A stretch of DNA of 64,000 nt from Macrostomum lignano (Eukaryota), in contig NIVC01000438.1 of the NCBI GenBank assembly GCA_002269645.1, positions 624,272-688,271 of the forward strand. Reading direction: 5' to 3'. Positions within the stretch are counted from its first letter, which is position 1. Each line of letters begins with the position of its first letter. The notes beneath the pieces were generated by a model. The model had not been told where the DNA came from, made no database searches, and saw nothing but the letters and a program-made list of their open reading frames with translations. A program made the translations under genes and the position numbers. Below are positions 1,681 through 34,343 of this stretch, piece after piece.

Positions 1681-2392
1681 CCAAAAAATCTTCATCTCGA
1701 TCTACACTACACACTAAAATCATCTCAGTTAAAACTGCTCTTAAGGCTTTACAACCAAACTAACGAAATACTATTTTTTTCTAAAAAATGTGAAAAAACG
1801 AAAACAATGATTACAGTTTACAAGCCTACTACTGCATCATTAGCAGACTAATTGATTTTAATTAGGGCAAACAGGATCTAAAACAACACTTAATCAAATT
1901 GACGTTTGAACAATTTTTTCTATGAAAGCATTAAACTTTGATAACTAATTTTCGAGAAGACGTACTACTTACTAGTAGACGCAAAATAATTAGGGATTTT
2001 TACTGAAATAAACTTATAATTGTCGTGAAAATTGTAAAGATAATAATCATACACCTTGCACCTCCTAATAATATATATAATCTACCGATACTACTGATTT
2101 GAGTTAACATAAAGTAATACAAAAAGAATATATTCACTTTATTATCTTACGCAAAAAAAACATTTTTCGTGCAGATTAGTATGACGCAAATAAGACTTTA
2201 TGAACGCAGAATGGTTTAAACTAAAATATATGAGCGTAACTATTTATAGAAATTTGTAATTATTTAATATAATTAATTTGTAATGGTATATTATAGATTA
2301 CAAAAAGGTAATCACGAGGAACACAATGAGGCCACAATGAATAATGACAGGCACTGATATTTTTTTGGAATCCACAGATGCCGGATATTTGA

Positions 2393-4158: not shown

Positions 4159-4613
4159 CGAATCCAAAACAATTCTTTCAAAAAAATTTGAGTATTAATT
4201 TATTAACGCAAAAATGGAACGCAAAACGAAGTGTATTTAATCATGGAAAAATTTCGACAAAAAGAACGCCTAATACGATATAGAAATTAATGTAAGCGAA
4301 TTAGGCATCTAATAACGACAGATTTCAACAAATAATATTTTATTATGCGAAAAACAACAGTATACACGGACACAAATACTCAAGAAAAAAACACTTACAA
4401 GCAATCAATAAAATCAATCAATGGCGTTGGAAATCTCGAACTTGAATCTCGTTTTCTAATCACTCTACTAACTCTCCAGTAAATAAGTAGCAATATAAGT
4501 GTTTTCTACCATAATCATATATAATTAAATATATAAAAAATCACCTTGACCAAGATAGAAAATAATCGAAAAAAATGGCTTCAACAACCAAACGTGATAG
4601 AGTCTGAGGATGG

Positions 4614-7600: not shown

Positions 7601-9448
7601 GCGAACTTGTTGAACTCGGATGGCAACGTCTAGCAGCTGGTTGGCGATGGCGCGGCCCTGGGCCGGCTTCATGCCTTTGTGGGCGGCCAGCTCCACCAGT
7701 ACGCTGACGTACCATTCGAAATTTGTGATGAAGCGGTAGTCATTCTGGGAGCAGATACCGATGATCTTGCTGAGCAGCTCGTCTCTAGAAATTACAATTT
7801 GGGTTTAGATTTGTACTTGGAAAGGTAGCCTAGCAACTGACAGTTTGAGAAGCTGATGGCCCAACAACTGACATTCTGGGAGGCTGGCCTAGAAACTGAG
7901 GATCTGGGAGGCTGGCCCAACAAATGGGGATCTGGGAGGCTGGCCCAGCAACTGAGGATCTGGGATGCTGGCCGAGCAACTGAGGATCTGGGAGGCTAGC
8001 CCAGCAACTGATGATCTGGGAGGCTGGCGCAGCAAATGAGGATCTGGGAGGCTGGCCCAGCAACTGAGGATCTGGGAGGCTGGCCCAGCAACTGAGGATC
8101 TGAGATGCTGGCCCAGCAACTGAGGATCTGGGAGGCTGGCGCAGCAAATGAGGATCTGGGAGGCTGGCCCAGCAACTGAGGATCTGGGAGGCTGGCCCAG
8201 AGGAGGTAGGAGAGTCACTTTGAAAAGACCTCAATGACAAAAAATAAACAAACAAGTGAGTTTATCTCACCGATAATGTGCTCCTTCAGCTTTTTCCATG
8301 TGCACAATGAGCTTCTTGACAATCTCCATGAGGTTCTTCTTAGACACCATACCGTAGAGAAGGCTCAATGCCCGGAGCCTAATGGACTCATCCTTGTCAT
8401 CTAGGCACTGCATGATGAGCTCTTTGTGAGCTTGCACAGACTTTGGATGAGTTTTCAGTATCTTCGTCATAGCCAGCAGGCCTAGATACTTTAAATTCTG
8501 ATCGCTATCCTCAATAAGGATTTGCAATTTTTGAACGCACAATTGCACGCTAGTAGCGTGATTCTGGAGCCCGGAGCTGATGGAGATGAGCACGGCAATG
8601 ACAGTGTTAATACACTCGTACAACAGCGACATAGCCGATGTACTATGAATCAAATTAGTCAACGGTTCGATCAATTTCTTGCCAAGCCGCGGTTCCAGCG
8701 GAATTAGCGCGCCAAACAGTTTAATAATCTTAATCAGCACCCAATTATTAGTCGACGTTGTCATCAGTTTAAAGAACAGAGGCGCCAGGCTAAGATAGTT
8801 CTGCGGATTCTTGCGAGCCAACTCGCAGATCACATTAACGGCGGCACTCTGCACGCCTGGGTCTGGGTCTTCCAGTTTCTCTTTTAGTCGACCAAATGCC
8901 GGCTTAAGCGAGTCTGGAAATCTCAAGAACACCTTGTACATGAGCAGGACGGCTTTCTTTCTAAGATAAGGCTTAGTTGACGTCATCAATACCATGATGT
9001 CGTTGGCTAAATCGTGAGCAAGATCGCCAGTCATGAAGCAGGACAAGCTGGACAAGGCTACCCCAGCATCGTAGGTGTTAGTAGAGTTGAGATCCTTGCG
9101 CACCAAGTTAGTAGTCAGCATAATTACGTCGGTGCCATCGTGGAAGCTCTGCGAAGCGGCTAAATAGCCAATCCGTTTGAATGTAAACTTTGGCGAGCTC
9201 ATCACTTCCACTATGTTAAAGCCGGCCCAAGAGATGTCATAGCCAAGCATCTGCAGGTACACAAGCTTGTTAATAGCATTGGCTTTCACCACTAAAGATT
9301 CTTGCTTCAGCTCCTGTTTGATCTCTTCGATGCATTCAGAAATGTATTTGCCCTCAGTGTCTTTATGATTGCGAATACCGCGAACCAGATCTTGAAGGTT
9401 CTTGTCCAGGACATGGTCTAGGACACCTTTCACCCTTACTAGAGCCAT
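4614..9448 (-). CDS. AP3D1: AP-3 complex subunit delta-1 (delta-adaptin), 3 exons: 9448-8271, 7784-6677, 6194-4614 (3867 nt, 1288 aa)
   Basis: N-terminus LQDLVRGIRNHKDTEGKYISECIEEIKQELKQ and the adaptin-N trunk are typical of AP3D1. GT-AG introns 8270-7785 and 6676-6195 join in frame to give AHYR|DELLSKIIGICSQNDYRFITNFEWY and Q|PSEAELAAMRETRLREQESNPNYLK. Lys/acid-rich hinge follows. Confidence 0.96.
6283..6607. repeat. 22/24-bp G-rich minisatellite (GAGTGCGTGGGTGGAGAGGCCATA) filling AP3D1 intron 2
   Basis: Direct reading; 24- and 22-bp variants alternate at the left end. Confidence 0.93.
7853..8200. repeat. 28-bp minisatellite (CTGGGAGGCTGGCCCAGCAACTGAGGAT) filling AP3D1 intron 1
   Basis: Direct reading; about 12 imperfect copies. 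Confidence 0.93.
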
Positions 9449-9950: not shown

Positions 9951-12296
9951 CCCTATTGGAATAAGTTGACAAAACGCGGACGATCGTCCATTGCATTTTT
10001 GGATTCTCCTGGTGTCACATCGCCCGACAGTGGTGTCAAGTGATGTGTCGCATCGCGCGACACTGTGGAAACCTGGTGTTGTCATGCGTCGTGTTGCGCG
10101 ACACGACACAACGAGATGCAAAGTGTGGCAAAAAAAAAAGTGTGGCAACTTGGCGGCTGGTGTTGTCATGTGTCGCATTGCGGCCTGGATCTGCAGCCAA
10201 AACCTTGCAAACTGTGTTTTATTGTAATATGTTCACGGTTGTTTCTCGGTATTTAAATGTTTCAAACATGTTCGATAAAAACTAATTCTTGAATTGTTCT
10301 TTTTTATTTTGACAGTAAAATAACTAATACTTCAAATATAATTTTTAGAAAGGTTACTTGTTAGTTACAATGCATGCGCTGTTTTCTAACTGTTGTACCT
10401 TTGTTGTTTTACTGTTTATTGTTTTTGAATTTCATTTCTTTTTCCGCGAAATTGAAAGGAATACTTTTGTCCCTCGCTCCATGGTCTTGGTATTGGGAGT
10501 GAACGGCAGAACAAGAATTGTCAATTGCAATGTGGCTGCTGTGGCGTCCCCCCCCCCTGGTCATTCAGTCAACAGACATAGGTGTTGCGTCGCGCGTCGC
10601 TGCCCCCCAGTCAACAAAATTTGGTGTCGCATTGCACTTTTGAGGGCACAATTTTGGCACCCGTGTTGCGCGTCCGCAGGTTTTTGAAACTTATTCCAAT
10701 AGGGGTCCAAGGTTGTGACTGCAATGCTGCTGTGGACAGCAAACACTAAAACCCATGGATCAAAGAAGCCGCTTCCTAAAAGCTGTAGCCCAGTGCATTT
10801 CTAGTGAGTACAACCCACATCCCAATAAACTCACACCAAAAATCCACAAATTATCACTTTCATATCTCTTAATTAAATTTCATACGCTGAATTTTTGTAG
10901 ACATCATTCACAGCAACAAGAGACTAAAGTGTCAGTTGCCTAAAAACTTATCTAAGCGAAATAGGCCATTCTCTTTTATTGGCGAGATTCTTAAAAGGAT
11001 GACAAAGAAAGCGCAATCAACCAGTAGAGCAGAGTAGGCAAAAATAAGGCTCCTTTTTGTTTTCCTATAAAACTGAATAAGCTCAATAAAAGTGCAAAAA
11101 CTTTAGAAAAAATATTGATTGCTCTATCACTTTGCCACCAACTGAAAATGGAAGAGCCCTAAGTAAAACTAGGCAATGTTATTAATGTATAGATAGTCAT
11201 TAAGTTGCGTTGAATGCTTTGATTGAGGACTCGCTAGATTCAAAGAACCGGAGAAGTTCTGGGCTGCATTGCCATGTGAGGAATTTCTATGCCTACTGCA
11301 TAGAAACGCCGACAGTGAGCGGATCATCAAATGGATTGCTAACAATGTCACAAAGCAGCAAAATGAGCTAGTGGATTATATACTAGACTATTTTGTCCAT
11401 CAAGTCCTAGCTAAAGGCCTTCAAAAAAGAGCCATCCAATTTTTGCATGGACTGCTTGCTGTTGGTCATCAGCTTTGATACCCATGCAATTGCCGAAGCA
11501 TGTGCTAAGGCAAAGGAGTGTGAAGAAATAATGAACCACCTTCAGAAAAAGCTAACCATGCAGCGTCAGAAGGCCAATGAGTGGAAAAAAAGACAAAAAG
11601 CAAGAGGACAAAGCTGCTGAACAAAAGGTTATCAACAAAATGAGAAAACATCTCTGGCATAAGAGATACTCCAAAAGGCAGATCAATGAGATCAACAAAC
11701 GAGAAGTGAATTACTCGACGATAATACCAGTAAAAACTTAATGTCTATATTAAATTGAGTTAAGACATAATTTCATTTGAGTTAAGACATTACTTGAGAT
11801 ATGATTTGAGACTGAATGATTTGAAATTGGCGTAGTGAAGTGGGAAGTCTGGAATTTGGAAATACATAAAATCGTGTCAGTGTCACAGGGTTGTTGTCTG
11901 AGTTAATAATAAAATATCACTGGCTTCAAAAAAAGTTTTTAAAAGGTTTTTGTGACTAGAAATGTAAATTTTTTGTTTTCTGTTTGTTAATTATTTTACA
12001 TGAAGAAATTTTTTGTTCAAAAAAGCCTAATGTTGCTGCTCAAAAAAATTTGTCCTGCTCAATTATTTTCAAAATGCTCTGTGGTCACACTGCTCTTAAC
12101 TACCACTGTTTACCTATTTGCCCCTCAATATACTAAAACTGACATGTTGTCTATATGTATGTGGGTATGTGAGTATGTAACAAAATTATTCCTAGGCTTT
12201 TTTTATATAAAGTGTATCATGCTTGACACACATAGTAGGCAAAGTGTATAATGCTTATTACCCATTAGCAGACTTTGAGGACTTATTCCAATAGGG
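9951..12296. mobile_element. Putative non-autonomous DNA transposon with 16-bp TIR CCCTATTGGAATAAGT and an internal extra terminus at 10689-10704
   Basis: CCCTATTGGAATAAGT at 9951-9966; exact reverse complement at 10689-10704 and 12281-12296. A stop-interrupted coding-like stretch lies at about 11270-11750. Confidence 0.55.
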
Positions 12297-12785
12297 TAAA
12301 TAATTGTTATTATTTACCACTTACTACTAAAAACACAAGGTGTTCAATATCTAGCCAAATTCCCTATATAAGTAAATTTATATATAATATAGAAATAATA
12401 TATAATAATAAATGCTATTTTCCCGTAGCTAAACTTGTATAATTAGAAATTTAATTTATAATAGATAAACATAAGATTGCAATATTAAAGGTACTATTTA
12501 CTAGATAAAGAAGTTGATTAATCTAAGTTGTCAATTACTTGAAGATAAAGTTGACAGTTTATACAGTAATAACTAAGTCTTTTGTCTTTGCACTAAAAGA
12601 CTGTCTTTAATGTTGCAGGACAAAAGTCAAAGCATAGTGAGAATATGCAAATTGCAGGAATAGAATACAAATATGAATAAGAATTAAGGCCTAAAAATTC
12701 TTTTTTTTTCTTTTTAAAATATAACTAAATCAAACTTCTAAAAGTGTTAAAAAAAATAGGATAATTTTAAGTATTTATTAGGTTA

Positions 12786-13575
12786 TGTTGTGAATTCGTA
12801 ACTTAATGTATTAATACAAATATTTGCCCTTACTGTAGTCTCTCTCTCTCTCTCTCTCTCTCCCTCTGCCAACCCTTCCCACCCCTTCCATGCTTGCAAC
12901 TTGTTGTGAGCTATTTTCTTAGAGTACTTTATTTATTTTTGGTGCCACTGCACTAGACCCAATCAATTGACAAACTATTATTGTAGTTGTTTATTTGTCC
13001 AGCCTATGTCTGCAACTTTCTCATCCCTGATTATTATTATCCCTCCCCCTCCGTGCTCTCTCATTGGCTGTCGCTGTTTTCTGTAATTCTGGTTTTCTAC
13101 CCCCCAGTCGCGTTTTGTGTGGCTGCAGCCAATCCCCGCTCGCTCTCTCTACGCACCCCGCCTTTTCTCTTACCCTGCAGCTTTTGCCCCACCCCATGTT
13201 GTGCTGGCAGATATTTATTGGCGTGCGCTCCTGTCTTCTCCCTCCCATGCGACTGCTTCTCTTTTGACTCCTTCGCCGCAAATAGTATATGACAATAAAC
13301 CAAAAACAAGCGTGCCAACAATTGTGTTCAACCTAGACGCCTAGCGCGCCAAGTATCTGCGCCACAGTAAGTATTGTTCTGTTCCTGTCATTTCGGGGTC
13401 AAGTGCCTCTAGGACTTTGTCACTGGGGCCTGTGCATTCGCTGCGACCCTGGTTGCTGGCCTACTGCCTGCGCGTTTGTGCGACAGTGGGTTGGCAAGCA
13501 GCAGGACTGGGGCTGCGTTTTCCTGCTCGTACAGAGCGCAAGACGTAGCTGGCTGGTCCATCTCGGGACACAACA
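12786..13575 (+). repeat. 5' LTR (790 bp)
   Basis: Direct repeat of 20418-21207 (about 17 substitutions by eye); TG...CA; AATAAA near 13294. Confidence 0.97.
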
Positions 13576-13576
13576 T

Positions 13577-13594
13577 TGGTGCCGTGACCAGGAT
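13577..13594 (+). promoter_or_regulatory. Primer-binding site complementary to the 3' end of tRNA-His
   Basis: TGGTGCCGTGACCAGGAT, 1 nt after the LTR. The recalled metazoan tRNA-His(GUG) 3' complement is TGGTGCCGTGACTCGGAT (16/18 match). Confidence 0.8.
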
Positions 13595-13751
13595 AGTATT
13601 GTGCTTGAGGGTGTTTATGAGCTCGTGTTAGAATAGTTTAGATTAGTGCGGCTAGGGATCTGTTTGGAAGAGGGATTGCTTCCGATTTGTTAGTGTCGTT
13701 TTTACGTCATTGTGTTTCTGTTGTTGTTGAGCATACGATTGCGCTGTCGTG

Positions 13752-14858
13752 ATGGGAGACGAAGGTGTGAATAGACTGGTGGAGTTAATGTCGGCGTCAG
13801 TTTGTCGGGCGTTGCAGCAGGACATCAACGTGGCACAGAATGTACAGCGGCCAGCGAAGCCCCCGAAGTACTGCATTGGAGATAATTTCAGGCTATGGTT
13901 GCAGAGGTTCAATGCCTATTGTGAAGCATCGCAGATAGTGGAAGACAATCGCCGGCCTCATCTCTTCAGCTTCTTGGATCTAAATACGGCTTTCGCGGCA
14001 GTGGAGAATATTCAGCTGGAGGAGGGTGCCACGTATGATGATTTCACCGATGCACTCCTAGAAAGGTTCCAGCAGCAACGCACGGCCGAGGATTTCAAGC
14101 TGGAGCTGGAGTCGCGAGTCCAAAAAGAGGGCGAGACGTATGAGACTTATGCAGATGTGCTGTTAGAGTTAGCAAGGAACGGGTACCCAGATGAAGACAT
14201 GCCAGTCGGAATCATCAACAGCTTTGCCAGAGACCACTTCAAGAAGGGCATCCGAGCACCGGAACATGTCAAAGAGTACGTTATGCTGCAGCAACCCGCC
14301 ACCCTTACGGATGTGATTCGTTGCGTGCAACGAAAGGAGGCCGCCGGTCGAGCCACCAAGCCGACAGGTTCAGAACAAGCTTACCGGAAAATTGCTTCGA
14401 CCATTGGTGTGGTGAATACCGGAGGCACCAGTTCAGACGGATTAGAAGAACTTCAACAGCGGATTCAAGACCTGGAAGGGCAGTTGAAGCGGCTGAATCA
14501 GGCACCGCCTCCTCAACAGTCTGCTGCACCCTTGTCTTCTGGGTCTGCGCGTTCGCGCGGCCCGGGGCCTGGGTTACAAGGTGGCAGAGGGGCCTGCGTG
14601 TATGGCGCGACCCCTAGTCAGCTGGCAGGGCAGCAGCAGAGGCAGGCCGGTGCTTGCTTTCAGTGTGGAAACATTGGCCACCTAGCGCGCGAGTGCCCAA
14701 GTCGCTCCGGAATGATGCAGCAACCGCAGTCAAACCCAGCGGCGAGGACTGGTGGTCCAAGGCGTTGCTACGCGTGCAACCAGCCGGGTCATCTGGCCAA
14801 GAATTGTTGGTCGGGAAACTTCAACAGAGGTCCTGGGAAGGGGAGCCAGGGCCTCTAA
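13752..14858 (+). CDS. gag: Gag (capsid-like region plus two CCHC zinc knuckles)
   Basis: Intact ORF, ATG at 13752; CFQCGNIGHLAREC and CYACNQPGHLAKNC. Confidence 0.93.
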   Translation: MGDEGVNRLVELMSASVCRALQQDINVAQNVQRPAKPPKYCIGDNFRLWLQRFNAYCEASQIVEDNRRPHLFSFLDLNTAFAAVENIQLEEGATYDDFTDALLERFQQQRTAEDFKLELESRVQKEGETYETYADVLLELARNGYPDEDMPVGIINSFARDHFKKGIRAPEHVKEYVMLQQPATLTDVIRCVQRKEAAGRATKPTGSEQAYRKIASTIGVVNTGGTSSDGLEELQQRIQDLEGQLKRLNQAPPPQQSAAPLSSGSARSRGPGPGLQGGRGACVYGATPSQLAGQQQRQAGACFQCGNIGHLARECPSRSGMMQQPQSNPAARTGGPRRCYACNQPGHLAKNCWSGNFNRGPGKGSQGL

Positions 14859-14879
14859 TCCAGTCAGCCAAACCTCCCC
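14813..14879 (+). promoter_or_regulatory. -1 programmed ribosomal frameshift signal (G GGA AAC plus predicted H-type pseudoknot)
   Basis: Heptamer 14813-14819 in the gag frame. 6-nt spacer. Stem 14826-14836/14846-14856. Loop GGGGAG (14840-14845) is complementary to CTCCCC (14874-14879). pol is in the -1 frame. Confidence 0.8.
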
Positions 14880-17800
14880 CGTCCAGTCAGCAGCCGGTTG
14901 ACACACCAAGTCTGATGATGCATCCTACCAGTGTGTATGTGTCCTGTCAAATCGGTGGTCAGGTGGTCTCTGCATGTGTCGACTCGGGCGCTGCTGTGAC
15001 GATCATAAATGAAGCTTTGCTTCAGAGAGTGAGAAAGACTTGGACAAAATCGCCACCGAGTATTCAGCCTCATAAATCAACAATCCATGCTGCCAACAGC
15101 AGCCCAATCAACATCAGTGCGATCTGCTAACTTCCCTTAATGATAGGCGAGAGCGAATTGAGTATGACAGCTCTAGTATCCTCGTCGGTTTCCTACGAGC
15201 TGTTAATGGGAGCCGACTTTCTGCTTAAGCACAACTGCCGCATCAATTTTCAAGATGGTGTACTTCACCTAGCAGATGCCAGCGTTCCGCTACGTTTTCA
15301 CCAACGGCCTGCAACTGTGTGTCACATTCTAGCGTCGGAGCGAATTGTGGTTCCGCCTGGAGCAGAGAAGATAGCATCTGGTCGATTCTTAATGAAGGGT
15401 GGAAGAGGACGATACACGAGAAGCCCAGGAGTAATTGAGGAAAGTCAAGACCGGAAGCGCGCAGGTTCCGCGGTGTTAGCGAGGTCCTTAGTGATGCCCA
15501 CGGAAGACGCTCGAGTCCCCGTACGGCTGGCAAACTTCTCGGAGGTTCCTGTCACCATCCGCAAGGGTGAGACAGTTGCGTGGTACCATCCGCTCGATCC
15601 GCTGCAGCCCATCGCGCTAGCAACGTTGAGTGAAGCCAAGGATGCAGCTCCGACACTGGAAAAGCCTTGCCAAGAAGAGAGTGAGGTGGCCGAGGAGCTC
15701 CTAGCAGGTCTGAAGAATTGGGGAAGTTGTGGTTTGTCGGCAGAGCAAGAGGCGAAGTTCAGAGCGCTAATCCAGTGCAACAGAGACGTATTTGCAACCG
15801 AACTTGCCGAGGCCACGGTAACGAATGTCAGTGAGCACCGAATTGACACGGGGACGGCAAGACCTATCAAACAGGCTCCACGACGACTGCCGCCACATCT
15901 TAGAGCAGAAGTTGACGAGCAACTTGATGAGCTTCTGGCGCAAGGAAAAATCGAAGAGGCAATGTCCCCATGGAGCTCGCCAGTGGTCTGTGTGCAAAAG
16001 AAAGACAATTTGCTTCGAATGTGCGTGGACTATCGTCGGGTCAACAATGTGACCGTTAAGGACGCCATTCCACTACCTTGCATCGATGAAGCCCTAGAAG
16101 CGCTACATGGAACAGCCGTGTACAGTTCCCTAGATCTGCAATCTGGCTACCATCAAGTTCCGGTAGCTGCAGAAGACCGAGACAAGACTGCATTTGCTGT
16201 GCCGCACCGCGGACAATTCCAATGGCTAGTGATGCCATTTGGTGTCACCAACGGCCCAGCAATGTTCAGCCGCATCATGCAAACTGTGCTGCACCCATTG
16301 GCCTAGAAGATATGCCTCGTGTATCTGGACGACATTTTGGTTTTTTCTAACACCGTAGAAGATCATCTGGCCAGGTTGAGTGAAATTTTTCAGCGGCTGA
16401 GAAGTGCAAATCTAAAGCTGAATCCGAAGAAGTGCGAGCTGCTTAGTTCCGAAGTGAGCTTTCTGGGTCATCGAGTCTCGGCGGACGGCATCGGAACTGA
16501 CCCAGAGAAGGTCCGAGCAATTTGCGAGTGGCCGACACCATGCACTGTCAAGGATGTGCAAGCGTTTCTCAGCACTGTTGGCTACTACAGGCGTTTTATT
16601 CAAGATTTTTCGCACACAGCTGAACCATTGATGGAACTGACAAGATCTACATCACCGTTCCAGTGGGGATCGGCCCAAGAAGAAGCCTTCCAGCGGCTGA
16701 AAGAGGCGCTGACCGGAGAACAGGTCATGGCGTACCCGAACTTTGCTCCAGATGCACCGCCGTTCATCTTGGATACAGATGGCAGTTTGTCAGTGGGAAT
16801 CGGAGGCGTCCTATCTCAGCTGCAACCGGACGGGTCGGAGAAAGTCATTGCGTACGGATCACGCACCCTGTCATCTGCAGAGCGGAATTACTGCATGACC
16901 CGCGTTGAGCTCCTCGCTGTAGTCACCTTTATTCGCCAATTCAAGTACTTTCTGCTCGGGAAGCACTTCATTCTTCGAACCGACCATAGCAGTCTGCGCT
17001 GGCTGCATTCATTCAAGAATGTTGAAGGTCAAGCTGCGAGATGGCTGGAGCAGCTAGCCTGCTTTGACTACACGATCATACATCGAGCAGGCCGGGACCA
17101 TGGGAATGCCGACGGGTTATCACGTAGGCCGAGAAGCCACTTTGGAGCAACCACGTGCCTGTCCTGCAAGGAGCAGCCTGAGGTCAGTGCAGTAACATTC
17201 GAGTCGGGACTCCAACAACGCGTCCATGAAGCGCAGCTCAAACATCCTGAACTACGTCTGCTAAGACAGGCAGTGCAGACAGGGCGACTAGAGTCGCTTG
17301 GAACTGGGCACCCAGGACCAGGAACACCCTACTGGAAGGCGCTGATGGCCAGAAAAGATGAACTGTGCATGGTCAATGACCTGCTGTGCATCAGGACAGA
17401 GAAGAATTTCAAAGTTGTTCTGACGGCAGAAACGACGAATTTGGTCATCTTAGAATTACACAGTGGAGCCAGTGGAGCGCACAGCAGATTTTTCAAGACG
17501 AAGAAAAAAGTGACCTCGCGATTTTGGTTTCCGGGCCTTGGCAGACTGGTAGAAGAGTTCATTCGATGCTGTGTAACCTGCAGAAAATCAAAGACGAAGC
17601 AGCGAGGCCGAGCACCCCTCGAGCCGATTCAAACTGGTGCTCCATTTGAACGTGTCATGGTTGACATTGTCGGACCGCTTCCACAAACAAGGAAAGGAAA
17701 CATGTACATCCTGACAATTCAAGATGCTTTCACCAAATGGCTGGATGCGTACCTGCTTCGAAACCAGAAGGCTGCAAGCTGTGCAAAGGTGTTTGTCGAA

Positions 17801-18733
17801 TGCTGGATCAGTCAACACGGATGTCCGCAGTTCCTGCACTCGGATCAAGGCCAAAATTTCGAGTCAAGATTAACTACGGAACTGCGCTCGTTGCTAGGCA
17901 TCAAGAAGACAAGAACAACACCGTACCACCCAATGGGGAACGGTCAAGTGGAAAGCTTTAATCGTACGCTTGGCACCAGCTTGAGAAGCCTGATGGTCAA
18001 AAATGGAGCAGCGCAGTCAAGTTGGGAAGAATTTATACCGGCGGTGCTAATGGCGTATCGGTCCAGTGTACATCGAGGAACCGGCTACACACCGCACTAC
18101 CTGGTGTACGGTGAGGAGATGCGACTGCCTGTTGACCTGATGAACAAGCCGCCTCAAGTGCAGCCGAGTGAAACAACGGAATATGTTGCTGAACTACATC
18201 GCAAGATGCAAGCAGCTGGCGACACCGTGCGGACCAACCTGTCAATGTATCAGAGACAGCAAAAGGATCAGTACGACACGGGAGCTCGTGGTTCGGGATT
18301 CAACGAAGGAGATCTGGTCTACGTGTATCAGCCTTGTCTGGAGACCGGCGAAGCAAAGAAGTTCCATGTGTACTGGACTGGACCGGTGAAAGTGTTCAAG
18401 CGAGAAAGTGCAACTCGATACAGGGTAGGGCACCCGACGAACAACCGGAAGAGGAAAACCGTGCACTTTAACAACTTGCACCTTTACCGTCGCGCTGAAC
18501 AGAGTGAGCAAGATGGGCAACGTGTACCGGTCCCTGAGCAACGGGAATCCGATGAGCACAACGAGGAGGATGATGATGAAGATGGCGAGAGTGAGTGGGT
18601 GCAGCTGCCTCAACCCGAAGCAGTAGATTTCGGAGTCCCTGGCAGTCCGGGTAGGCCACCCACGCCAGAGCGTCGTTACCCGGTTAGAAACCAGGTCCCT
18701 ATGCAGTTTTTTGGTAATCCCGTGCATCACTGA
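14813..18733 (+). pseudogene. pol: Pol (aspartic protease, RT, RNase H, integrase) with two in-frame stops (TAA 15128-15130, TAG 16304-16306)
   Basis: ORFs 14654-15130, 15140-16306 and 16319-18733 share one frame. PR: VDSGA and LLMGADFL. RT: CVDYRRVN, LDLQSGYHQV, MPFGV, YLDD. RH: ILDTDGS, ELLAVV, TDH, ADGLSR. IN: HHCC, VDIVGP, HSDQG, NGQVE. Confidence 0.95.
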
Positions 18734-18834
18734 CCAGTCATGGAGCGAACGCACAGGATGAAGGAGGCAGAAAAGTGCATGAATTTAAATAGTCGTCTAC
18801 CTTCTAGCAAGTCAATTGCCATTTCATTTTTAGT

Positions 18835-19686
18835 ATGTACTACAAAGTCCTGGGTGTCGCATCTGATGCGACCATGCAGCAGGTTAAGAAGGCTTACTAC
18901 TAGCGCATACGTCATGCACATCCAGACAAGGTAGGGCCAGGCGCTCGGCGGCAGGCACAAGAAATAAATGAAGCGTATCGAGTATTGAGTGATCCGTTTC
19001 TGCGAATCGTGTACGAACAGTTTGGTCCCGAGGGTGCGCAGGCGCCGAAAATGTTTCTGTCACGACTGAGACTGCTAGCTGGGATGGCAATACCGACTAA
19101 GTACTTTGAGCAGGTGGAAATATCGTCAGAATCTGAGGATGACACCGAGGATGAGCAGGAAAGTCGACTGCAGTTGATCGGGAAGCCGAGTGTGGGAAGC
19201 GAAGATGAGCCAGTGAATACAGCGGTCCGCAACAAATTGAAGCGCGCTTGTTTACGTGGGAACGCGTCGGAAATTGCGAGGTTGATGGCGGAAATCCGGC
19301 AGTTATATTCGGCGCGTCAGGCAGTAGCTGAGGTCAAGAGAGCGTTACTGAATGGGTTAAAGGATCTAGCGACGAAAAAGATCGGCCCCTCGAAGATTGT
19401 CATGAGCGTCAACGAGTACAAATCGACATCAAGAGCAGTGTGGGAAGCTGCTCAGTCGCTAGAGTTCCGCTGTGTAGGAGTGTTAGTAGCGTCAGTGCGT
19501 TGCTTTAGGCCCTTCCTGGTCAATAAGGTTTTTAGGCGGGCACCAATGGCACCCGGGACGGGGGAACCCAACCGTTCCAGCCCTGCTGCGGACGCGGATG
19601 TCCTGGTGCTGGATGCCGAGGAAGAGGACCTGGATGACCTGGGCGAGGAAGCGACGAGCGGCGGCATGAACTCGTTGAAACTGTGA
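18835..19686 (+). pseudogene. Extra ORF3 of the LTR element: DnaJ/Hsp40 J-domain protein (283 codons, one internal TAG at 18901-18903)
   Basis: Same frame as track ORF 18985-19686. Reads MYYKVLGVASDATMQQVKKAYY*RIRHAHPDKVGPGARRQAQEINEAYRVLSDPFLRIVYEQFGPEG, with HPD at 18919-18927, then an acidic linker, a helical/basic region and an acidic tail. Confidence 0.88.
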
Positions 19687-20404
19687 ACATTGAATGACGG
19701 ATCGTGGCAACAGAATGTTAAGGACCCAGGCCCGGGTTCAGCCTTAGCAACTGCCGTGGAGGCGATGCAAGTGTTTCATCGAAAAGTCTTGTCGCGAGTG
19801 ACCTACAATGTACCTGCCCTACACCTGACCTACAGCGCGCCGGCCCCACACCTGACCTACCACACACCAGCCCTACATTTGACTGCCTAAGCTGAGTGCA
19901 CCTGAGTTTTGAAAGTCAGTTTAGACTACTGTAAAATTTTCGAAGATTGCTTATTCCTTGCGCTGTTGTTGATTCTCAGGAGTTTCAATTTCAATTTTGT
20001 TGCTGGTTTTGAGATCGTGCTGCAAGCCTGGCTGCGTCTGAGATGCCTTAATTGCTGGCGTGATGCTAATTCTTAATAATTGTTTTTTGCATAACCAAGT
20101 TAATACAACATTAATTGTCATCTTTTTGCCCTGTTGGCCAATTTTCTGTTCAATGCTCAATGTTCATGTTCCGTATTCCATGACAACGTTGAATTTTCCA
20201 TGTTATGTTCTCCCTTTCATCCTTTCATGTTTTTGCATCATCCATCACTCTTCATGCCATTGCCAGCCGGCTCGCTCTCAATCACTGGTGAAGGGAATTT
20301 TTTTGCTCATCTTGCTCATCGCATGCAAAGGCCCCGCTGATACTTGTACAAGCCGAATTGTCTCAAATACTGTACCATACAAACATTTTTTGTGTGACTT
20401 CGTC

Positions 20405-20417
20405 AAGAAGGGGAGAA
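20405..20417 (+). promoter_or_regulatory. Polypurine tract AAGAAGGGGAGAA
   Basis: Pure-purine run directly abutting the 3' LTR. Confidence 0.92.
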
Positions 20418-21207
20418 TGTTGTGAATTCGTAACTCAATGTATTAATACAAATATTTGCCCTTACTGTAGTCTCTCTCTCTCTCCCTCTCTCTCCCTCTG
20501 CCAACCCTTCCCACCCCTTCCATGCTTGCAACTTGTTGTGAGCTATTTTCTTAGAGTACTTTATTTATTTTTGGTGCCACTGCACTAGACCCAATCAATT
20601 GACAAACTATTATTGTAGTTGTTTATTTGTCCAGCCTATGTCTGCAACTTTCTCATCCCTGATTATTATTATCCCTCCCCCTCCGTGCTCTCTCATTGGC
20701 TATCGCTGTTTTCTGTAATTCTGGTTTTCTACCCCCCAGTCGCGCTTTGTGTGGCTGCATCCAATCCCCACTCGCTCTCTCTACGCACCCCGCCTTTTCT
20801 CTTACCCTGCAGCTTTTGCCCCACCCCATGTTGTGCTGGCAGATATTTATTGGCGTGCGCTCCTGTCCTCTCCCCCCCATGCGACCGCTTCTCCTCTGAC
20901 TCCTTCGCCGCAAATAGTATATGACAATAAACCAAAAACAAGTGTGCCAACAATTGTGTTCAACCTAGACGCCCAGCGCGCCAAGTATCCGCGCCACAGT
21001 AAGTATTGTTCTGTTCCTGTCATTTCGGGGTCAAGTGCCTCTAGGACTTTGTCACCGGGGCCTGTGCGTTCGCTGCGACCCTGGTTGCTGGCCTACTGCC
21101 TGCGCGTTTATGCGACAGTGGGTTGGCAAGCAGCAGGACTGGGGCTGCGTTTTCCTGCTCGTACAGAGCGCAAGACGTAGCTGGCTGGTCCATCTCGGGA
21201 CACAACA
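20418..21207 (+). repeat. 3' LTR (790 bp)
   Basis: Direct repeat of 12786-13575. Confidence 0.97.
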
Positions 21208-24109
21208 GTTAACTAGACTATATACTTTGAATGCAAATTATTTAAGAAATATAAAAAACTAAATTTGACACTATCATGGCAACTAGGGATTGCCAATTCC
21301 CCAGACATTAAAAGACTAAAACTGCAAATGTGGTAAGAAATGGTACTTTTGCTACATTTTTTTGCATTTTTACATATCATATATTCATACTTTTATCTGT
21401 GTGTATTGAAGAACATCTAGTATACTAAAATATTAGTTCATTTTGTCTAAAATATACTTTTTTATTGCTGATTTATGTTATATCACTTTACATGTGATTG
21501 TGATTTGGTTGTCTGTGGTTTGTGAGCATAGGCATAAAACTGATTGAATATTCAAAAAGATAATATACAAAGTTCAAATAAACAATACAAAAATTTTTCC
21601 ACTTCCTAAATTTCCTTTCTTTTTAGCATTTGCTCATTAAAATATAATGTATTTTATAAAAGAAACATATAAACATATAAATAGGTTTGAACTTTGGATT
21701 CATACATGTGCAACCTCCAAAATTTGGTCGGCCATGCAACTTAGTTTTAACAAAATGCAACATAGTTTCTGGCCAAAAATGCGACTTACATATAAGAAAA
21801 CGCATTAAGCAAAATTAAGGCAACTTTGGGTAAACGGCAGGAGTAACTATGACTGTCTTATTTAGTCAAAATGCCTCATCAGCTAATTAGTACTACTACT
21901 TGGGTATTTTTGGGTGGGCATTTTTGCTACTTCCTTGGTTGGCTGCCAAATCGGTCAGCCAGATTGGCCGACTATTGTGCATGTATGTTTGGATTAATTG
22001 AATGAATGAATTCAACTAGATTGGATAAATTGAAAATCAGATTCCATAATAATAAAAAGTACATTAAAAATTCAAATAAAATAATTGCAATTGCAATACT
22101 TTTATACTTTTTAATTGTAGACTTAGTCAATAATCTTCTAAATATACTAAATCTCTAATAACTTATCTATAAATAAAGGAAAACAAATGAGCAATAATTT
22201 AAGTGCTCAAAAACAGATCTACTATAATTCTTTTATTTATATATTTAGTTTGAATCACCGGACTAAACCCTAGACCTTCATTTGGGGTCTCTGGGGGGCT
22301 ATAATATGCTTATAGTGATATGCTTATAATATGCTTACTTGCATTTTGCATCTAATGAAATATTCAAATATAGTAAACAGGAACAACTCAAGTTACTCAA
22401 CTAAGTTTATCAGAATCAATGTTTCTAAATTTTTGTTCTACAAACCTATTTTTTTAAGTTAGGCCGATTGATTCTTTTAAAGCAATATAATTTATAAAGT
22501 TTTCAATTTTAATAATTCCTCAAAACAAGAGATGCAATGTGTTGCCTTATCTTTAATTCCTTTTTTTCAATTATGAGTCACAAGCCTACAACCCCTAGCC
22601 TAGGACTCTTGACTCTTAAAATACAAACTTTTGTTTGGTTTTTTTTAATTATAATAATAACTAAACTAAAGTCTAAACAAAATCAATAATGTAGTTTAAA
22701 AATATTAGTCTTAGACTAGATTAAAACTATTCTAATTTAAAAAAATGGAATATAGCCTAGACTCTAGAGTTATATATAAAAATTAAAAATTAAAATTAGC
22801 ATAGGCCTATATAATCTGCGACTGTGACTAGGGCCACACTTTAGAGTTTAATATTTATTTAGTATACTAGCTATAGGCCCTACTTTTGCTTAGGCTTGGA
22901 AGAAGTGTAGGCCTAGTTAATTTTATTTAGGTCTGTAAAAAATGGACTTAATTTTATACAACTTATTAATAAGAAAATTAAACTTGGTTGCAACTGCAAC
23001 TTGCAATGCCCATTAGCATAAATGGTAATATGTCTAAATAATTTATTTACTTCTTAGTTAGGGCCTAACATTAATACTTGTCCTCATTCATAACGTCATA
23101 CCTCCATAATTAATAATTTGAATTTGAGCAGGCTAGGACATAGTTTTATAGTAGGACAATATACATTATATACAAATCATCAAAATCAACAAATCATTAA
23201 ATCATAAAATCATCCTGAACGAATAATAAATATAAACATGTACACGAAAAGACAGATAACAGGAGCAAATATCAAAGAACGCTGCTTTAATTAGAAATAG
23301 GCATAGGCATGTTCAGTTTATTGGCCATATTAACTTTTTATAATAGTTAAGTGAGCTGCAAGCACCAAGACATTGTACGTGGTTCGACATTAAAAGTACA
23401 TGTCCAACACAAATAGCAGCAAAATGCTCAAATGTTGTTAGCATAGAAATACACAAGATTTTATATCCAAATCAAAACATTTATATCTTTAATTAGTCAG
23501 TTAATAAAATATTTGTTTATTTTAAAATGCGGCGACACAACTTTGTTTTAACTCTTTAGAAAGTTCATGCTAGAACACCGAAATGATCGAGCTCTGCGCA
23601 TGGACGACAGAAAAGAATGGAGTGCTAATCTGACAAAGTTATTTTTGTCTCGCTCGATCTTAACTTTTAACATCCTTTTCTCCCGTTCTTTCCCATTGGC
23701 TCGTGACTGCCATAGACAAAGTATTTTTCGTCTCGTTTTCGTTTATTCGTTCCCCTCTGAAAGGTTCTGTCCCAGCATATTACGAGCTCGCATCAAAATA
23801 TGCTTTCAGCCAATAGGAAGGAACGGGGGAAAGGGATGTAATAGCGAAAATCGAACGAGATAAAAATAACTGGCTCAGAATAGCACTCTCATTCTGTTCT
23901 TTCCTCCATGGCTCTGCGTGCTGGACGAGATCGAGGCTGCTATTTTCTGCAGAGGCGCTGACGAGCACGTGACGAGGCTGACAGCAGTTTGTCTACTTCG
24001 GTTGTCTAGTACGTGGCTGCAGCCATTTCGACGTTAGATGACGTCGCCGTCGTGGACTATGCCTAGACTGCCTATATAATTCCGTTGTGAGAGGGCTGAG
24101 CTGCAATCC

Positions 24110-24530: not shown

Positions 24531-26436
24531 CGCTCTCTTGTGCGACATCATGTCCCTCGCTTAACTGGCTGGCAAATTTGTCGTTAGGTCAATTCTTTGA
24601 ATCAATTTTCTTAGGTCAATAATATTTATGCTGCCAATTCATAATCCATAGTTAATGGATTATGAATTCATAATGCATAGTTAATGATTCGCCGTTCGAA
24701 AATTTCCCAAGGAGGGTTACTGTTATACATTGTAGCTTATAATAAGCTTTTCAAGATAAGCAGCCTGCAGAAAGCACAAGAACATTGGCAGCGCCATACA
24801 TATTACAGTATTTCGTTTTCAAAACTGCATAGGGCTACGTGCGTTTGCTCCAAAGCTCTATAAACTACCGTCTACAGAGACACAAACCTTATATTTTGAC
24901 ATCGCAAGAATAAGAGCTTTAATAAAAGTTTAATATACATGTAAATCCTCGCACTATCAATTTGATTTTTATAAAGCACATATACATATGTATTTTTTAT
25001 GGTGGGAGAGTTTAAATTCTTTAGAATTTTCTTTAAAAACTAGCTTTTCAGTCCCATGTACTGTAGCTACTCGTCATCTTCGTCCGATAATTGTGTTTCC
25101 ATGACTGCGACTTAATACATGTACGTACTGTACATGTATAACGCGTCGTCAGCCGTCAACGTAAATGTAAAAATAAAGATCTATGCCAGCGCCGTCCATG
25201 GACGTTGGTACGTTGGGTAGGTCGGTGGGACGTAGGAATTATGTTTAATGGGGGGTTGTACATGCAAATGACAAAGTGAAATATGCATGTACACAAACCA
25301 CTACACTATAGCAAAGGCAGAGCAAGCATCTCTTCGTACTAGTTCGTCGAACATGTACTTCTTCATTGCTCCACTTGGGGATAATTGAAAAAAATATCTG
25401 AGAGAAGTAATGTGCTGTAATTAAGCTGAAGAGGTGTTTATTAATATCTTTTAGCCAGAGATGCATTGATTAAAAGTACGTGTGCCAAAATTTCATCCGA
25501 ATTTAGACGACTCCAGTCACTTTAATATTTCAAGCTCCCAGGCATCGTGCAGTAATTTATTCATGATCGATGATCGCTACAGTTGCATAGCTAGGGAAAA
25601 CACCATTTACGACTAGATGTGAATGCAGTCGAATTTTCCTCATCGATTAAAATTGTCAGATGTGTGCTTACAGTTGACTAAACTATGCGGACGGTTCCAT
25701 ACTCTGACGACGTAAGAGACGGAACTCTTTTGATTCTGACTTAAATAAAGTCAATACATGTACATGTAACGGGTACAGCGCAGTCCCAGATTTCAATAGG
25801 CATTTTTTGGCACTAATGAGTTTATTAGGAGCTTTTTTGCAAAACAATCTAAAAGATCTATCATAGTTTTTTGCTCAAATGAAAAAATGCAGTGCCATAT
25901 TTCAGGCGCATTGAATTCATCATTTTCTTAGAAGTGTTTTATGGCTTACTGTACAATGGTCGAGCTACTTCAAAGCACGGTCTGGCCCCCTGTGCAACTG
26001 ATTGTAGAATTATGCTTGATTCGCCTGCGGAAACAGCTACAGAGGTTCAATATTAATAATATGCAGCTAAGAATTTCGACCCTATAAGCTTGATGCATGT
26101 GACAGATTGGCATAGATCATTTGCATACGCGTCAGTCACACAAGTTCATGTATAAAATGGGCTCCATAAACCAGTAAAACTGCCCAATTTCACAGTTTTA
26201 TATTTTTCAGCCCACAGAAACCCTGTCAGAAAAATCTTGTAAGACACGGAATCTCAAAAAATGAACAGAATTCAAGAGCACGCAATGAAAGAGGTAAGAC
26301 TACGGATAATTAAATAGTTCTTCACGTTTACACACGACCGACTACTGTACTGCCAATAAGTAACCAAAGATATCAAACGTAAAAGATTTCAGCAACCGAA
26401 GAGATTCCAACAGACACAAATTTGGAACAAGTATCC

Positions 26437-29400
26437 ATGGAGCTTGAAAGCACGACAGTAAAAACTGAACCAAAAAATCTGCTTTACTCAATCCTGGATG
26501 TGCCTCCAATCAGCCAGTGCATTCTGCTCGGTTTGCAGCACTTCATCACGATGATGTCCGGCACTGCAATTCTACCAACTCTACTGTTCAAGGCTCTGTG
26601 CATCACGGAGCTCAGTGACCAGTCGGCAGTGATTTCGTCCACATTTTTCGTGATGGGCTTGGCAACCCTGCTGCAGACGGTGCTGGGCACCCGACTGCCC
26701 ATCATCCAGGGCGCATCGGCCGCGTTCTTCGTTCCTACATTTGCGATTCTGGCTTCCGATAGTTTATCGTCGTGTCCAGTAATCTCGTTGGACAGTGGGA
26801 ATGCAACCCATGAAATAATTTCGGCCACAAACAACACTCCAGTCTGGATGGAGCGAATATCCACTGTAGGAGGTACTCTTGCAATCGCATCTGTATTCCA
26901 AGTACTATTGGGTGCCACAGGTCTTACCGCAGTGATGATGCACTACATTGGACCCTTGGTGGTTGCGCCCACCATCTGCCTGATCGGACTGTCGTTAGTT
27001 CCGATTGCATCGGCTAGCGCTGGTGGAAACTGGCTCATCGCTCTGCTGTAAGCATATGTATTAAAAAGCACACGAAGACCCCACCAGTCATACCAATTAA
27101 TACTAAAAAATGGACTAAAATTGCTTTAAGATCGCATCCATCATAAACCACAAACTTTTCGCAGCGTTTGTCTTCTAATTGTGATATTTAGCTACGTGCT
27201 CGATGCGATCAACGTACCGGTGCCAACTGTTTGGCAGTGTCGATTGCACTTTGTCCGACTTCCTTTGTTTAAGTCGTTTCCGGTAAGATTAGATAGATCT
27301 ACTTCCTATGTCGTACGATACGATTAGTAAATTCTTTCAAGAACTATACTCAAGAATATTTTTGCTCGGTCGGTTCCATCGTTTCATTTATGTGACGTTT
27401 CATACATCTAGTAGATAACAAAGTTTTCTTATCATTGTGCAGAACATGCGGATGTCTTTAAAGATTTTCTGACCGACGAGGATAGCGAATGTGACACAGC
27501 ATAAGTGGAGGGCGGTCGAACTTCGCGAAGGCAGACCGAGACCGGTTACTGGCCTGTTTTCCTTCCTCAGTACGAGCTAAGTCATAGCCACAGGTCGTCC
27601 TCTCCCACCACTCTCTTATTGTGCGCAGAAATTTCTTCTATGCTTTTATCTTTTTATATTATAATTTTCGATATTTATTCATCTACTTTTCTCAGTAGTC
27701 TAAGTTGAAACTTTCGCAGATACAATTACATTAACATTTAATCGAAAAGGCGAGACTGACCATTTAGCGTTGAAGCTGTTTTCACATACATACACAAGTT
27801 TTTGCAATTTTAGAAGACAATTTAGATAAGAAAAAAAATTGCTATCAGCAAGGCTTCAAAGCGTTCCTTACAAACTAACTAAGTACACACGCATTACCGT
27901 TACTCCTTTGTAGGTACTTCTTTCCGTGGGCATCACCTGGGCACTTTGCGGCATCCTAACCGCCTCGGAAGCCTTGCCTGATAACCCGAAAGCTTGGGGC
28001 TACGCTGTCCGTACCGACACGCGTTCAAGGGCGTTCGCCCAAGCCGATTGGTTCCGTCTGCCATATCCGGGCCAGTTTGGGACGCCTCGAGTACTTTTTG
28101 TCGGCGTACTGGGCATGATGGCCGGCTCACTTGCATCTATTGTTGAAAGCATGGGCGACTATGTGGCTGCTGCCAAACTGTCTGGAGCGCCGAGGCCTCC
28201 GGCTCATGCGGTCAACAGGGGTAAGATGAAGTCGAAGTGAAACCCCGACGCATTCAAGATATTCTCTGTCTTTCTCGAAGGCATTAATATTTTATAACAA
28301 ACTAGAAAGTTTCCGTTTGTACTCCATGGTTTTCATTTTGCCAACAGATTGTGCTAAAGTAGTCAATGCAAGTGAAGGATGCAGTGTTTTGCTTCTCCGT
28401 CAAACCAGAAGATCTGGTAGACCGACAATCAACGAGATATAGCAGTGAAGTTCTTGGCATCAGTACCCCTAAAGGACCCAAAAATAGATAGATACAAAAA
28501 TTTTGATGATAAAATCAAATTCCTCCAAAAAATCAATTAATCAATGAACTTGAGTGTGCATCTTTGTTATTTGAACATCACTGTGACATATCGACCTAAA
28601 TTGGTAATTACCTTTCTTGTGTAAATGACAAGTAAAATTTTTGCTATATTTTTTTACTATTTTTATGCTTTAATGATTCATTATCATACATAGTACGGTA
28701 CATAGACCTATAGAATGCACTCAACTTAATCCCCTCCCTACCCAAAATACAGGTGTGATCATAGAAGGTGTGGCTTGCATTCTAGCCGGCATATTCTGCT
28801 TGGCCACCGGCAGCACCTCCTACAGCGAGAACATCGGCGCCATCGGCATCACTCGCGTCGGTAGTCGTCGGGTAATTCAATACACAGCTGTAATCATGCT
28901 CATTCTTGGCATCTGTCCCAAAGCTGGGGCGGTGTTTGTCTCTCTACCTGAGCCAGTCATTGGCGGCTTGTTCCTTGCAATGTTCGGCATGGTGGCGGGT
29001 GTTGGCTTGTCCAGTCTGCAGTACGCCGATATGAGCAATCAGCGAAATGTGTTTATAGTTGGAAATGCATTGGCTTTTGGACTGGGCGTGCCACATTGGC
29101 TGAAAATGTCGGCACCTGATGGTGAAGGCCTGTCGCATGCAGAATCTCTACTAGCTGATGTAAACAGTGGAGGTAATTGTAGCTGACATGTATAGACACT
29201 TACTAACCTAGGTTGGTACTGTAAACTGACTGCTCCGAATTGACTTGACCGATTACGTGTCAATCACTCCTTCCAAACTTTGTAACACTCATGTCACTGC
29301 AATCGTTGATTAAACAAGAGGCATCAAAAAAACTTTTTCAGGTTTTCTTTTCAGATTTACGGAACAATTTTTATTCAATCACAAAGAAAGTTGAAATTGT

Positions 29401-33601: not shown

Positions 33602-34343
33602 ATGACTGAGGACGCCAATGAAAAAACTGAAGTAGCAGATGATTCGCCCAAACCAGCCAAAAAGAATCTGCTTTACTCAATCCTGGATGTGCCTCCAATC
33701 AGCCAGTGCATTCTGCTCGGTTTGCAGCACTTCATCACGATGATGTCTGGCACTGCAATTCTACCAACTCTACTGTTCAAAGCTCTGTGCATCACGGAGC
33801 TCAGTGATCAGTCCGCTGTGATTTCGTCCACATTTTTCGTGATGGGCTTGGCAACCCTGCTGCAGACGGTGCTGGGCACCCGACTGCCCATCATCCAGGG
33901 TGCATCGGCCGCCTTCATGATCCCAACTTTTGCGATCCTTGCTTCAGACAGGCTGCCCGCTTGTCCCGCTGATCACGTGGGCAATGACAGTTCGATTGAC
34001 GGCGGCGCGATTAACTCAACTACTAGTAGTAGTCCGGTGTGGATGGAAAGAATTTCATTCGTCGGCGGCACTCTGGCCGTATCTTCGCTGTTTCAGGTTA
34101 TTATGGGCTCGACTGGCTTCACGGCTATCATGGTTCGTCGTATTGGACCTCTGGTGATTGCACCAACAATCTGCTTGATTGGATTGTCGCTTGTGCCAGT
34201 TGCGGCTTCAAGTGCCAGTAGCAACTGGTATGTTGCCATGCTGTAAGTTACTCGCAGTCAAAAGATTTATTTGAGTAATTGCTGGAAAATTTTTGTAAGA
34301 CCGACAGACAGACAGACAGACACACACACAGACAGACAGACAC

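Follow-up and report, generated by a model that had tools for sequence, protein, structure and literature searches.

A J-domain protein gene as an accessory gene in a clade of animal Ty3/mdg4 (gypsy) LTR retrotransposons

J-domains that carry the histidine-proline-aspartate (HPD) motif dock on the chaperone Hsc70 and trigger ATP hydrolysis, and the non-J part of the protein decides where this takes place. The large and small T antigens of polyomaviruses use an N-terminal HPD J-domain to harness host Hsc70, and host Hsp70/Hsp40 is likewise needed by retroviruses, pararetroviruses and many RNA viruses, which borrow the co-chaperones of their hosts. Extra open reading frames (ORFs) have been described in several long terminal repeat (LTR) retrotransposons. 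The ORF3s of the Juno, Vesta and TelKA elements of bdelloid rotifers encode env-like, GDSL esterase or DEDDy exonuclease products (PMC5408684), and further cases are the additional ORFs (aORFs) of plant LTR retrotransposons (PMC7264820), an N6-methyladenosine (m6A)-demethylase domain in orchid Ty3/gypsy elements (PMC9289625) and CERV of Cer1 (PMC10309623). Here we describe a complete LTR retrotransposon of the flatworm Macrostomum lignano, located at positions 12786-21207 of a 64,000-nucleotide stretch of genomic DNA (contig NIVC01000438.1, positions 624,272 to 688,271 of the forward strand; hereafter the window, to which coordinates refer unless another element is named). Between its pol gene and its 3′ LTR lies a gene for a J-domain protein, here called ORF3. 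We conclude that ORF3 is truly an accessory gene, and that it belongs to a clade of animal Ty3/mdg4 (gypsy) LTR retrotransposons.

A sequence-only reading of the window had extended an ORF upstream, in frame through one stop codon, into what it took to be a complete J-domain. The extended translation matches the Pfam DnaJ family (PF00226) with 59.6 bits (E=3.3e-16; gathering cut-off 27.8 bits; in-frame stop entered as X) over profile positions 2-62 of 63, and the HPD(K) loop is present. The gene and the parts of its product are as follows.

18835-19686, + strand: ORF3, J-domain protein gene, 284 codons including the terminal stop, one in-frame stop (translation)
18838-19014, + strand: J-domain with HPD loop, residues 2-60 (Pfam DnaJ, PF00226)
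19045-19215, + strand: acidic linker, residues 71-127, isoelectric point (pI) 4.3 (charge/pI computation)
19216-19560, + strand: basic helical C-domain, residues 128-242, pI 11.0 (charge/pI computation)
19561-19683, + strand: lineage-specific tail ending in an acidic run (translation, family comparison)

The acidic linker, basic helical region and acidic tail that had been proposed to follow the J-domain are thus borne out by pI and composition, with 22 K/R against 7 D/E in the basic region. The proposed lack of a signal peptide and of a transmembrane segment in the window ORF3 also stands: no membrane span was found (highest 19-residue hydropathy 1.45), and no signal peptide was found in this or any other ORF3 of the family. 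Chance resemblance to a J-domain is excluded by the Pfam score together with the homologous ORF3s in six other elements described below.

The gene lies wholly within the retrotransposon, ~100 nt past the pol stop and ~720 nt ahead of the polypurine tract (PPT). The features of the element are:

12782-12785, + strand: target-site duplication, left copy GTTA (identical 4 bases at 21208-21211)
12786-13575, + strand: 5′ LTR, 790 bp, TG...CA (blastn against the 3′ LTR)
13577-13594, + strand: primer-binding site, beginning TGG, 1 base past the 5′ LTR (direct reading)
13752-14858, + strand: gag, open, 369 codons, two CCHC zinc knuckles (Pfam zf-CCHC, E=5.6e-12, two stretches; 0 internal stops)
14654-18733, + strand: pol, encoding protease, reverse transcriptase, RNase H and integrase (PR-RT-RNaseH-IN) in a single frame, 2 in-frame stops, no frameshift (Pfam)
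19687-20404, + strand: non-coding spacer from ORF3 to the PPT, with a 27-nt unit repeated 2.9 times at 19799-19877 (sequence reading)
20405-20417, + strand: PPT AAGAAGGGGAGAA, 13 nt, adjoining the 3′ LTR (direct reading)
20418-21207, + strand: 3′ LTR, 790 bp (blastn against the 5′ LTR)
21208-21211, + strand: target-site duplication, right copy GTTA (direct reading)

Relative to gag, pol is read in the -1 frame, and its start overlaps the end of gag. Pfam domains follow one another in pol in the order gag-asp_proteas, RVT_1, RT_RNaseH, Integrase_H2C2, rve and Integrase_p58_C. The element is a Ty3/mdg4 (gypsy, Metaviridae-type) LTR retrotransposon with the integrase after the reverse transcriptase, unlike Ty1/copia, and the nearest pol proteins carry Ty3 or 412-type pol annotation. 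The LTR pair, the GTTA duplication, the pol domain order and the Pfam DnaJ match together uphold the proposal of a Ty3/gypsy element with a J-domain gene in the env position. Its placement between pol and the PPT, inside both LTRs, likewise agrees with the mapped pol end (18733), PPT and 3′ LTR start (20418). The spacer between ORF3 and the PPT may be a cis-acting region; it has no Rfam match, and that of a related element described below (L018) is comparable, at ~570 nt. Scans of the window for tRNA genes and Rfam families found none.

The copy in the window is an aged, inactive insertion. Its LTRs are 97.85% identical (17 mismatches and 0 gaps in a blastn comparison of the flanks), a divergence of 2.15%, and there are 2 stops in pol and 1 in ORF3; the state of pol was judged from its stop count and from a single tblastn frame against the intact relatives P0007, P0009 and P0010. 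With three in-frame stops this copy is dead, and a function, if there is one, must therefore be attributed to the family rather than to this locus. As a catalogue of 137 M. lignano LTR-retrotransposon families describes, other families of this species carry heat-shock elements in their LTRs and use the heat-shock response for transcription (PMC12801592). Even with one mismatch allowed, neither the window element nor L018 was found to have a heat-shock element in its LTRs, and thus the window element lacks the heat-shock-element link described for those families.

The closest pol proteins are M. lignano gene models, and two gene models from sibling copies bear on the interruption of ORF3. One, P0039 (PAA81942.1), is 96-97% identical and derives from a sibling copy in the same assembly, GCA_002269645.1 (L001). 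In that copy one large internal deletion has taken out the part of pol for integrase together with the beginning of ORF3, and the 3′ end is missing as well. The other, P0126 (UniRef A0A1I8G7E4, annotated ‘J domain-containing protein’), comes from another sibling as a rearranged gene model. Both read without a stop over the J-domain stretch that they retain; the in-frame stop, for which a comparison with siblings had been suggested, is therefore specific to the window copy. The two gene models are thereby explained as transposon-derived, which matters for the annotation of the M. lignano genome.

To find relatives, we fetched the DNA around the best pol relatives of the window element. A homologous ORF directly follows pol in six further elements:

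L002 (Logan run SRR31628394): pol 69% identical to that of the window; ORF3 open to the contig end
L003 (M. lignano): pol ~50% identical; ORF3 open
L018 (M. lignano, NIVC01000975.1): pol ~50% identical; ORF3 at 9953-10933, open, with a chromodomain
L019 (M. lignano, NIVC01000514.1): pol ~50% identical; ORF3 at 10943-12505, open, HPD lost
L004 (Joint Genome Institute (JGI) sample 3300040801): pol 51% identical; ORF3 open
L005 (JGI sample 3300040801): pol 48% identical; ORF3 open to the contig end

Five of the six relatives’ ORF3s pass the Pfam DnaJ cut-off, with 58-69 bits. The sixth, that of L019, has a J-like domain without HPD that stays below it (18.4 bits), and a long C-terminal extension. 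A faint TatD-DNase-like stretch lies in this extension (14.7 bits, sub-threshold). The ORF3 of L018 has a chromodomain (Pfam Chromo, 35.5 bits; cut-off 25.1), located after the linker and ahead of the C-domain. The LTRs of L018 (834 bp) are 99.76% identical, and L018 is therefore a recent insertion; its ORF3 is open, and there is one apparent frame change in its pol. The location of ORF3 inside an LTR pair is thus seen at two loci, the window and L018. The possibility that the J-domain gene was a one-off capture, which had been raised with the sequence-only reading, does not survive this comparison: ORF3 is kept open in diverged members of the family, including the young L018.

Two of these elements showed further peculiarities. 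L003 contains arrays of 20-30-nt tandem repeats at its positions 7195-7454 and in the flanks at 496-1723 and 10012-11430. Its ORF3 continues beyond the end that is usual in the family, first through a hydrophobic stretch and then into the 20-nt repeat array, and this tail reflects either a lost stop or a lineage-specific extension. In L004, a 178-aa ORF upstream of gag (309-845) has no Pfam hit and may be the N-terminal part of gag or a further ORF.

Scanning viral contigs and JGI metagenome contigs with the ORF3 alignment gave 10 loci that match in the J-domain only, with no pol and no match to the post-J part. We rejected these loci as relatives of ORF3 and regard them as generic DnaJ genes. 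A word-index protein search with ORF3 and with the ORF3 alignment found generic DnaJ proteins and one further protein, P0127, an intact relative. This search missed P0039 and P0126, two products that share 95-96% identity with the query over 60-260 residues and that the exhaustive search did find, and its negatives are therefore no evidence of rarity.

In a neighbour-joining tree of pol (703 columns, 25 sequences, 200 bootstraps), the seven ORF3 bearers (the window element, L002, L003, L004, L005, L018 and L019) form one bipartition in 200 of the 200 bootstraps. Their sister group consists of L006, L007 and P0014. No ORF3 homologue was found in the sister-group elements L006 and L007, and in L006 the 3′ LTR begins ~50 nt past the pol stop, too close for one to fit. 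The simplest account is that the gene was acquired once, at the base of the clade, and was long retained afterwards. Recent exchange of one 3′ segment among the seven loci is excluded by ORF3 identities of 26-37%.

Selection on ORF3 was assessed both from substitutions and from the persistence of open frames. Between the window element and L002, the proportion of non-synonymous differences (pN) is 0.33 in ORF3 (0.25 in the J part) and 0.18 in pol, with synonymous sites saturated (pS 0.75), and these values indicate that ORF3 is constrained, but less than pol. Deeper comparisons are saturated; between lineages the pN of the C-domain is 0.52-0.59. The stronger argument for constraint comes from the frames themselves, which are open over ~260-500 codons in six separate lineages with the J signature intact. 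In ORF3 alignment A1 the residues H, P, D and K are invariant at an overall identity of just 26-37%. The HPD loop is present in the window and in L018, and absent in L019.

All ORF3 products share one layout, with an N-terminal J-domain, an acidic linker (48-210 residues, pI 4.1-4.8) and a very basic helical C-domain (pI 9.0-11.9), the last of which is present in all six full-length ORF3s. The 19-residue hydropathy maximum is below 1.6 in every ORF3 but that of L003, whose extended tail reaches 2.16. Against solved structures the family profile matches in the J-domain only, best to DNAJB2, B6, B8 and B1, with E values down to 1.7e-24. The G/F-rich (glycine/phenylalanine) region, the zinc finger (PF00684) and the DnaJ C-terminal domain (PF01556) are absent from all ORF3s, and PF00226 is the sole DnaJ module detected by Pfam. 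By this predicted architecture the ORF3 product is a stand-alone class C J-protein, though its J-domain scores best against DNAJB J-domains.

Structure was modelled for P0127 and for a part of the window ORF3. In the AlphaFold2 model of P0127, the predicted local distance difference test (pLDDT) score is 70-85 in the J-domain and ~60 in the helical C-domain. The J-domain of the model superposes on solved J-domains at 1.2-1.8 Å (Foldseek), among them the DnaK-bound J-domain of DnaJ (5nro_B, TMt 0.88). A model of the longest uninterrupted part of the window ORF3, from which the first helices are missing, reached a pLDDT of 44 and was too poor for use. The C-domain has no match in Pfam or PHROG, its PDB matches are de novo designed helical proteins only, and it shows no similarity to the element’s own gag or pol. 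An exhaustive phmmer search of 1.84 billion representative proteins with the post-J part returned two sibling products only and no cellular protein.

A possible expression signal abuts the gene:

18819-18834, + strand: pyrimidine tract plus AG, candidate 3′ splice acceptor (12 of 15 pyrimidines; AG ends 1 nt ahead of the ORF3 ATG)

An AG lies 0-2 nt upstream of the ORF3 ATG in six of the seven elements, against 25% of 596 control ATGs (the other ATGs of the seven elements), and an AG preceded by at least 9 pyrimidines in 15 positions occurs in four of the seven against 4.7% of controls. This acceptor-like site suggests that ORF3 could be the first ORF of a spliced subgenomic mRNA. Spliced messages are the usual source of ORF3 products in LTR retrotransposons (PMC5408684). 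Donor-like sites in the leaders of the elements are weak candidates only, and spliced-leader trans-splicing is an alternative to a cis donor.

In the explanation that we favour, splicing onto the acceptor-like site abutting the ORF3 ATG, either in cis or by trans-splicing of a spliced leader, would yield a subgenomic mRNA from which the ORF3 protein is translated. The J-domain would dock on host cytosolic or nuclear Hsc70 and trigger its ATPase; because HPD is present, we infer that ORF3 proteins stimulate Hsp70 ATP hydrolysis. The C-domain would supply the client, and since this domain is strongly basic, the most likely client would be the element’s own nucleoprotein, whether as Gag-associated genomic RNA, as the particle or as the pre-integration complex. 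Hsp70 would thus be brought to an assembly, uncoating or nuclear step of the element. For the identity of the client as the element’s own ribonucleoprotein or pre-integration complex, we consider the balance of probability to be slightly favourable.

Several observations weigh against this explanation. The client is a guess from charge alone, given a C-domain without a recognisable relative and a model of low confidence, and the fast evolution of that domain (pN 0.52-0.59) suits a host-directed arms race as well as a self-directed client. L019 lacks HPD, so that Hsp70 activation may be dispensable for some elements, unless L019 is decaying. In the window leader, the sole donor-like site falls barely within gag, and splicing from it would leave behind a short upstream ORF. 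Finally, the window ORF3 differs from that of its sibling L001 by 9 non-synonymous and 6 synonymous changes (omega ~0.47), and 15 changes are too few to be decisive.

The chromodomain of L018 may point to a nuclear or chromatin step, which the sequence-only reading did not contain. Tentatively, the clade may have kept its own J-protein from a single acquisition to control host Hsp70, the protein acting on chromatin in the nucleus, where it would steer integration or loosen silencing at the element’s own loci; we hold this scenario to be possible but doubtful. It would represent a new way for transposons to manipulate host proteostasis. The main rival to a self-directed client is an effector directed at the host, in which the J-protein would bring Hsp70 to a host complex, for example heterochromatin or piRNA-pathway assemblies, and remodel or dismantle it, in the manner of a T antigen, for counter-silencing or for integration-site targeting. 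The chromodomain, which scores above its cut-off and implies the reading of histone marks in the nucleus, argues for such an effector, as do the quick divergence of the C-domain between lineages, expected in a conflict with the host, and its dissimilarity to the element’s own gag and pol. However, the chromodomain occurs in only one of the seven elements and could equally tether the element’s own pre-integration complex, and a basic C-domain fits nucleic-acid binding too. We judge a host-directed effector to be rather unlikely.

It is less probable still that the J-fold works independently of Hsp70, as a structural or binding module, with the basic C-domain as the essential part serving, for example, RNA export, packaging or nuclear import, as in other small retroelement accessory proteins. 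The presence of the C-domain in every full-length ORF3 is compatible with such a role, but its only support from the J-domain is L019, which combines a long open ORF3 and a recognisable J-like fold with the loss of HPD. L019 is a single copy that may be decaying, whereas in the aligned sequences from the six remaining elements H, P, D and K do not vary in spite of the low overall identity given above, which is the signature of selection for Hsp70 activation.

Even further from the evidence is the view that ORF3 is a passenger without a role for the element, either a fragment of a host J-protein gene captured once or a host gene that happens to lie between two LTRs. The interruption of the window ORF3 and the sibling comparison, compatible with neutral drift, would fit it. 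On the other hand, the gene holds the same position in seven elements of one clade whose pol proteins are ~50% identical, it is open over 260-500 codons in six lineages with its J signature kept, it sits inside an LTR pair with a target duplication in the window and inside a nearly identical LTR pair in L018, and no cellular protein with this post-J part came up in the exhaustive search. We consider a passenger very improbable. An env-like gene for cell-to-cell transfer, as in errantiviruses, is the least credible reading: although ORF3 sits between pol and the 3′ LTR with an acceptor-like site ahead of its ATG, it begins with a cytosolic-type J-domain and has low hydropathy outside the L003 tail, and the reading is refuted by the lack of a signal peptide, a transmembrane anchor and a Pfam glycoprotein match.

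Regarding its surroundings, the insertion of the element is intergenic. Exons of an AP-3 complex delta-subunit gene (4614-9448, - strand; Adaptin_N, 379 bits, and an AP3D1 domain) lie ~3.3 kb upstream of it. Two similar stretches of the xanthine/uracil-permease family (26422-27051 and 33590-34246, + strand) lie ~7 kb apart, both matching Xan_ur_permease positions 2-147, which suggests a tandem gene duplication. An intronless ORF of 458 aa at 46617-47993 (- strand) encodes a rhodopsin-family G-protein-coupled receptor (7tm_1, 110.9 bits). At 2344-4191, overlapping long ORFs occupy the two strands (615 and 595 aa). Their only Pfam hit is of a low-complexity type, with no stretch that is significant by itself, and this region is probably repetitive sequence and not a gene.

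The favoured explanation, if true, would mean that the recruitment of chaperones can limit a retroelement so strongly that a gene devoted to it is worth its cost. The few accessory genes of LTR retrotransposons would thereby gain a new functional class. M. lignano, a transgenic and regenerating flatworm with heat-responsive LTR retrotransposons, would be a natural system in which to identify the client of a transposon J-protein.

The terms ‘DnaJ’, ‘J-domain’ and ‘Hsp’ are absent from the rotifer paper (PMC5408684) and from the plant aORF review (PMC7264820), and the main text of the M. lignano catalogue (PMC12801592) contains no DnaJ, J-domain or chaperone. In the full-text literature searched, we came across no paper describing a retrotransposon with a J-domain gene; Repbase, Dfam and GyDB lay outside this search, and priority is not settled. 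Within that scope, the expectation that a J-domain ORF is not standard cargo of LTR retrotransposons holds, and from its predicted domains ORF3 looks like the first retroelement-encoded Hsp70 co-chaperone.

Compared with the ORF3s and aORFs of rotifer, plant, orchid and Cer1 elements, the gene described here is alike in being an extra lineage-specific gene between pol and the 3′ LTR, acquired once, inherited within a clade and probably expressed from a spliced message, and unlike in its product, none of those being a J-domain protein or a co-chaperone. The arrangement in L018 also differs from that of chromoviruses, as its chromodomain is in ORF3 behind the J-domain and not at the C-terminus of the integrase; no chromodomain was found by Pfam in the pol or ORF3 of the window. 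Among viral proteins, the best structural matches in BFVD are giant-virus DnaJ proteins, baculovirus BJDP and phage DnaJ-like proteins, all in the J-domain only, and no retro-transcribing virus is among the top 50 matches. Like cellular class C (type III) J-proteins, ORF3 products have an HPD J-domain but lack the G/F region, the zinc finger and the DnaJ C-terminal domain, and their specificity presumably comes from the non-J part; unlike them, they are encoded by a retrotransposon, and their non-J part has no cellular relative at the sensitivity of phmmer. With the polyomavirus T antigens there is no homology beyond the generic J-fold. Neither the Pfam matches nor the 60 best PDB matches to the family profile include a T-antigen family or chain, and those PDB matches come from cellular DnaJ A/B/C proteins. 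Nothing in T antigens, where LXCXE, an origin-binding domain and a helicase follow the J-domain, corresponds to the acidic linker and basic C-domain, and T antigens belong to a DNA virus and not to a retroelement. The likeness to T antigens is purely functional: in both cases a viral or mobile genome supplies an HPD J-domain of its own, placed N-terminally in a protein of several parts, which would serve to harness host Hsc70.

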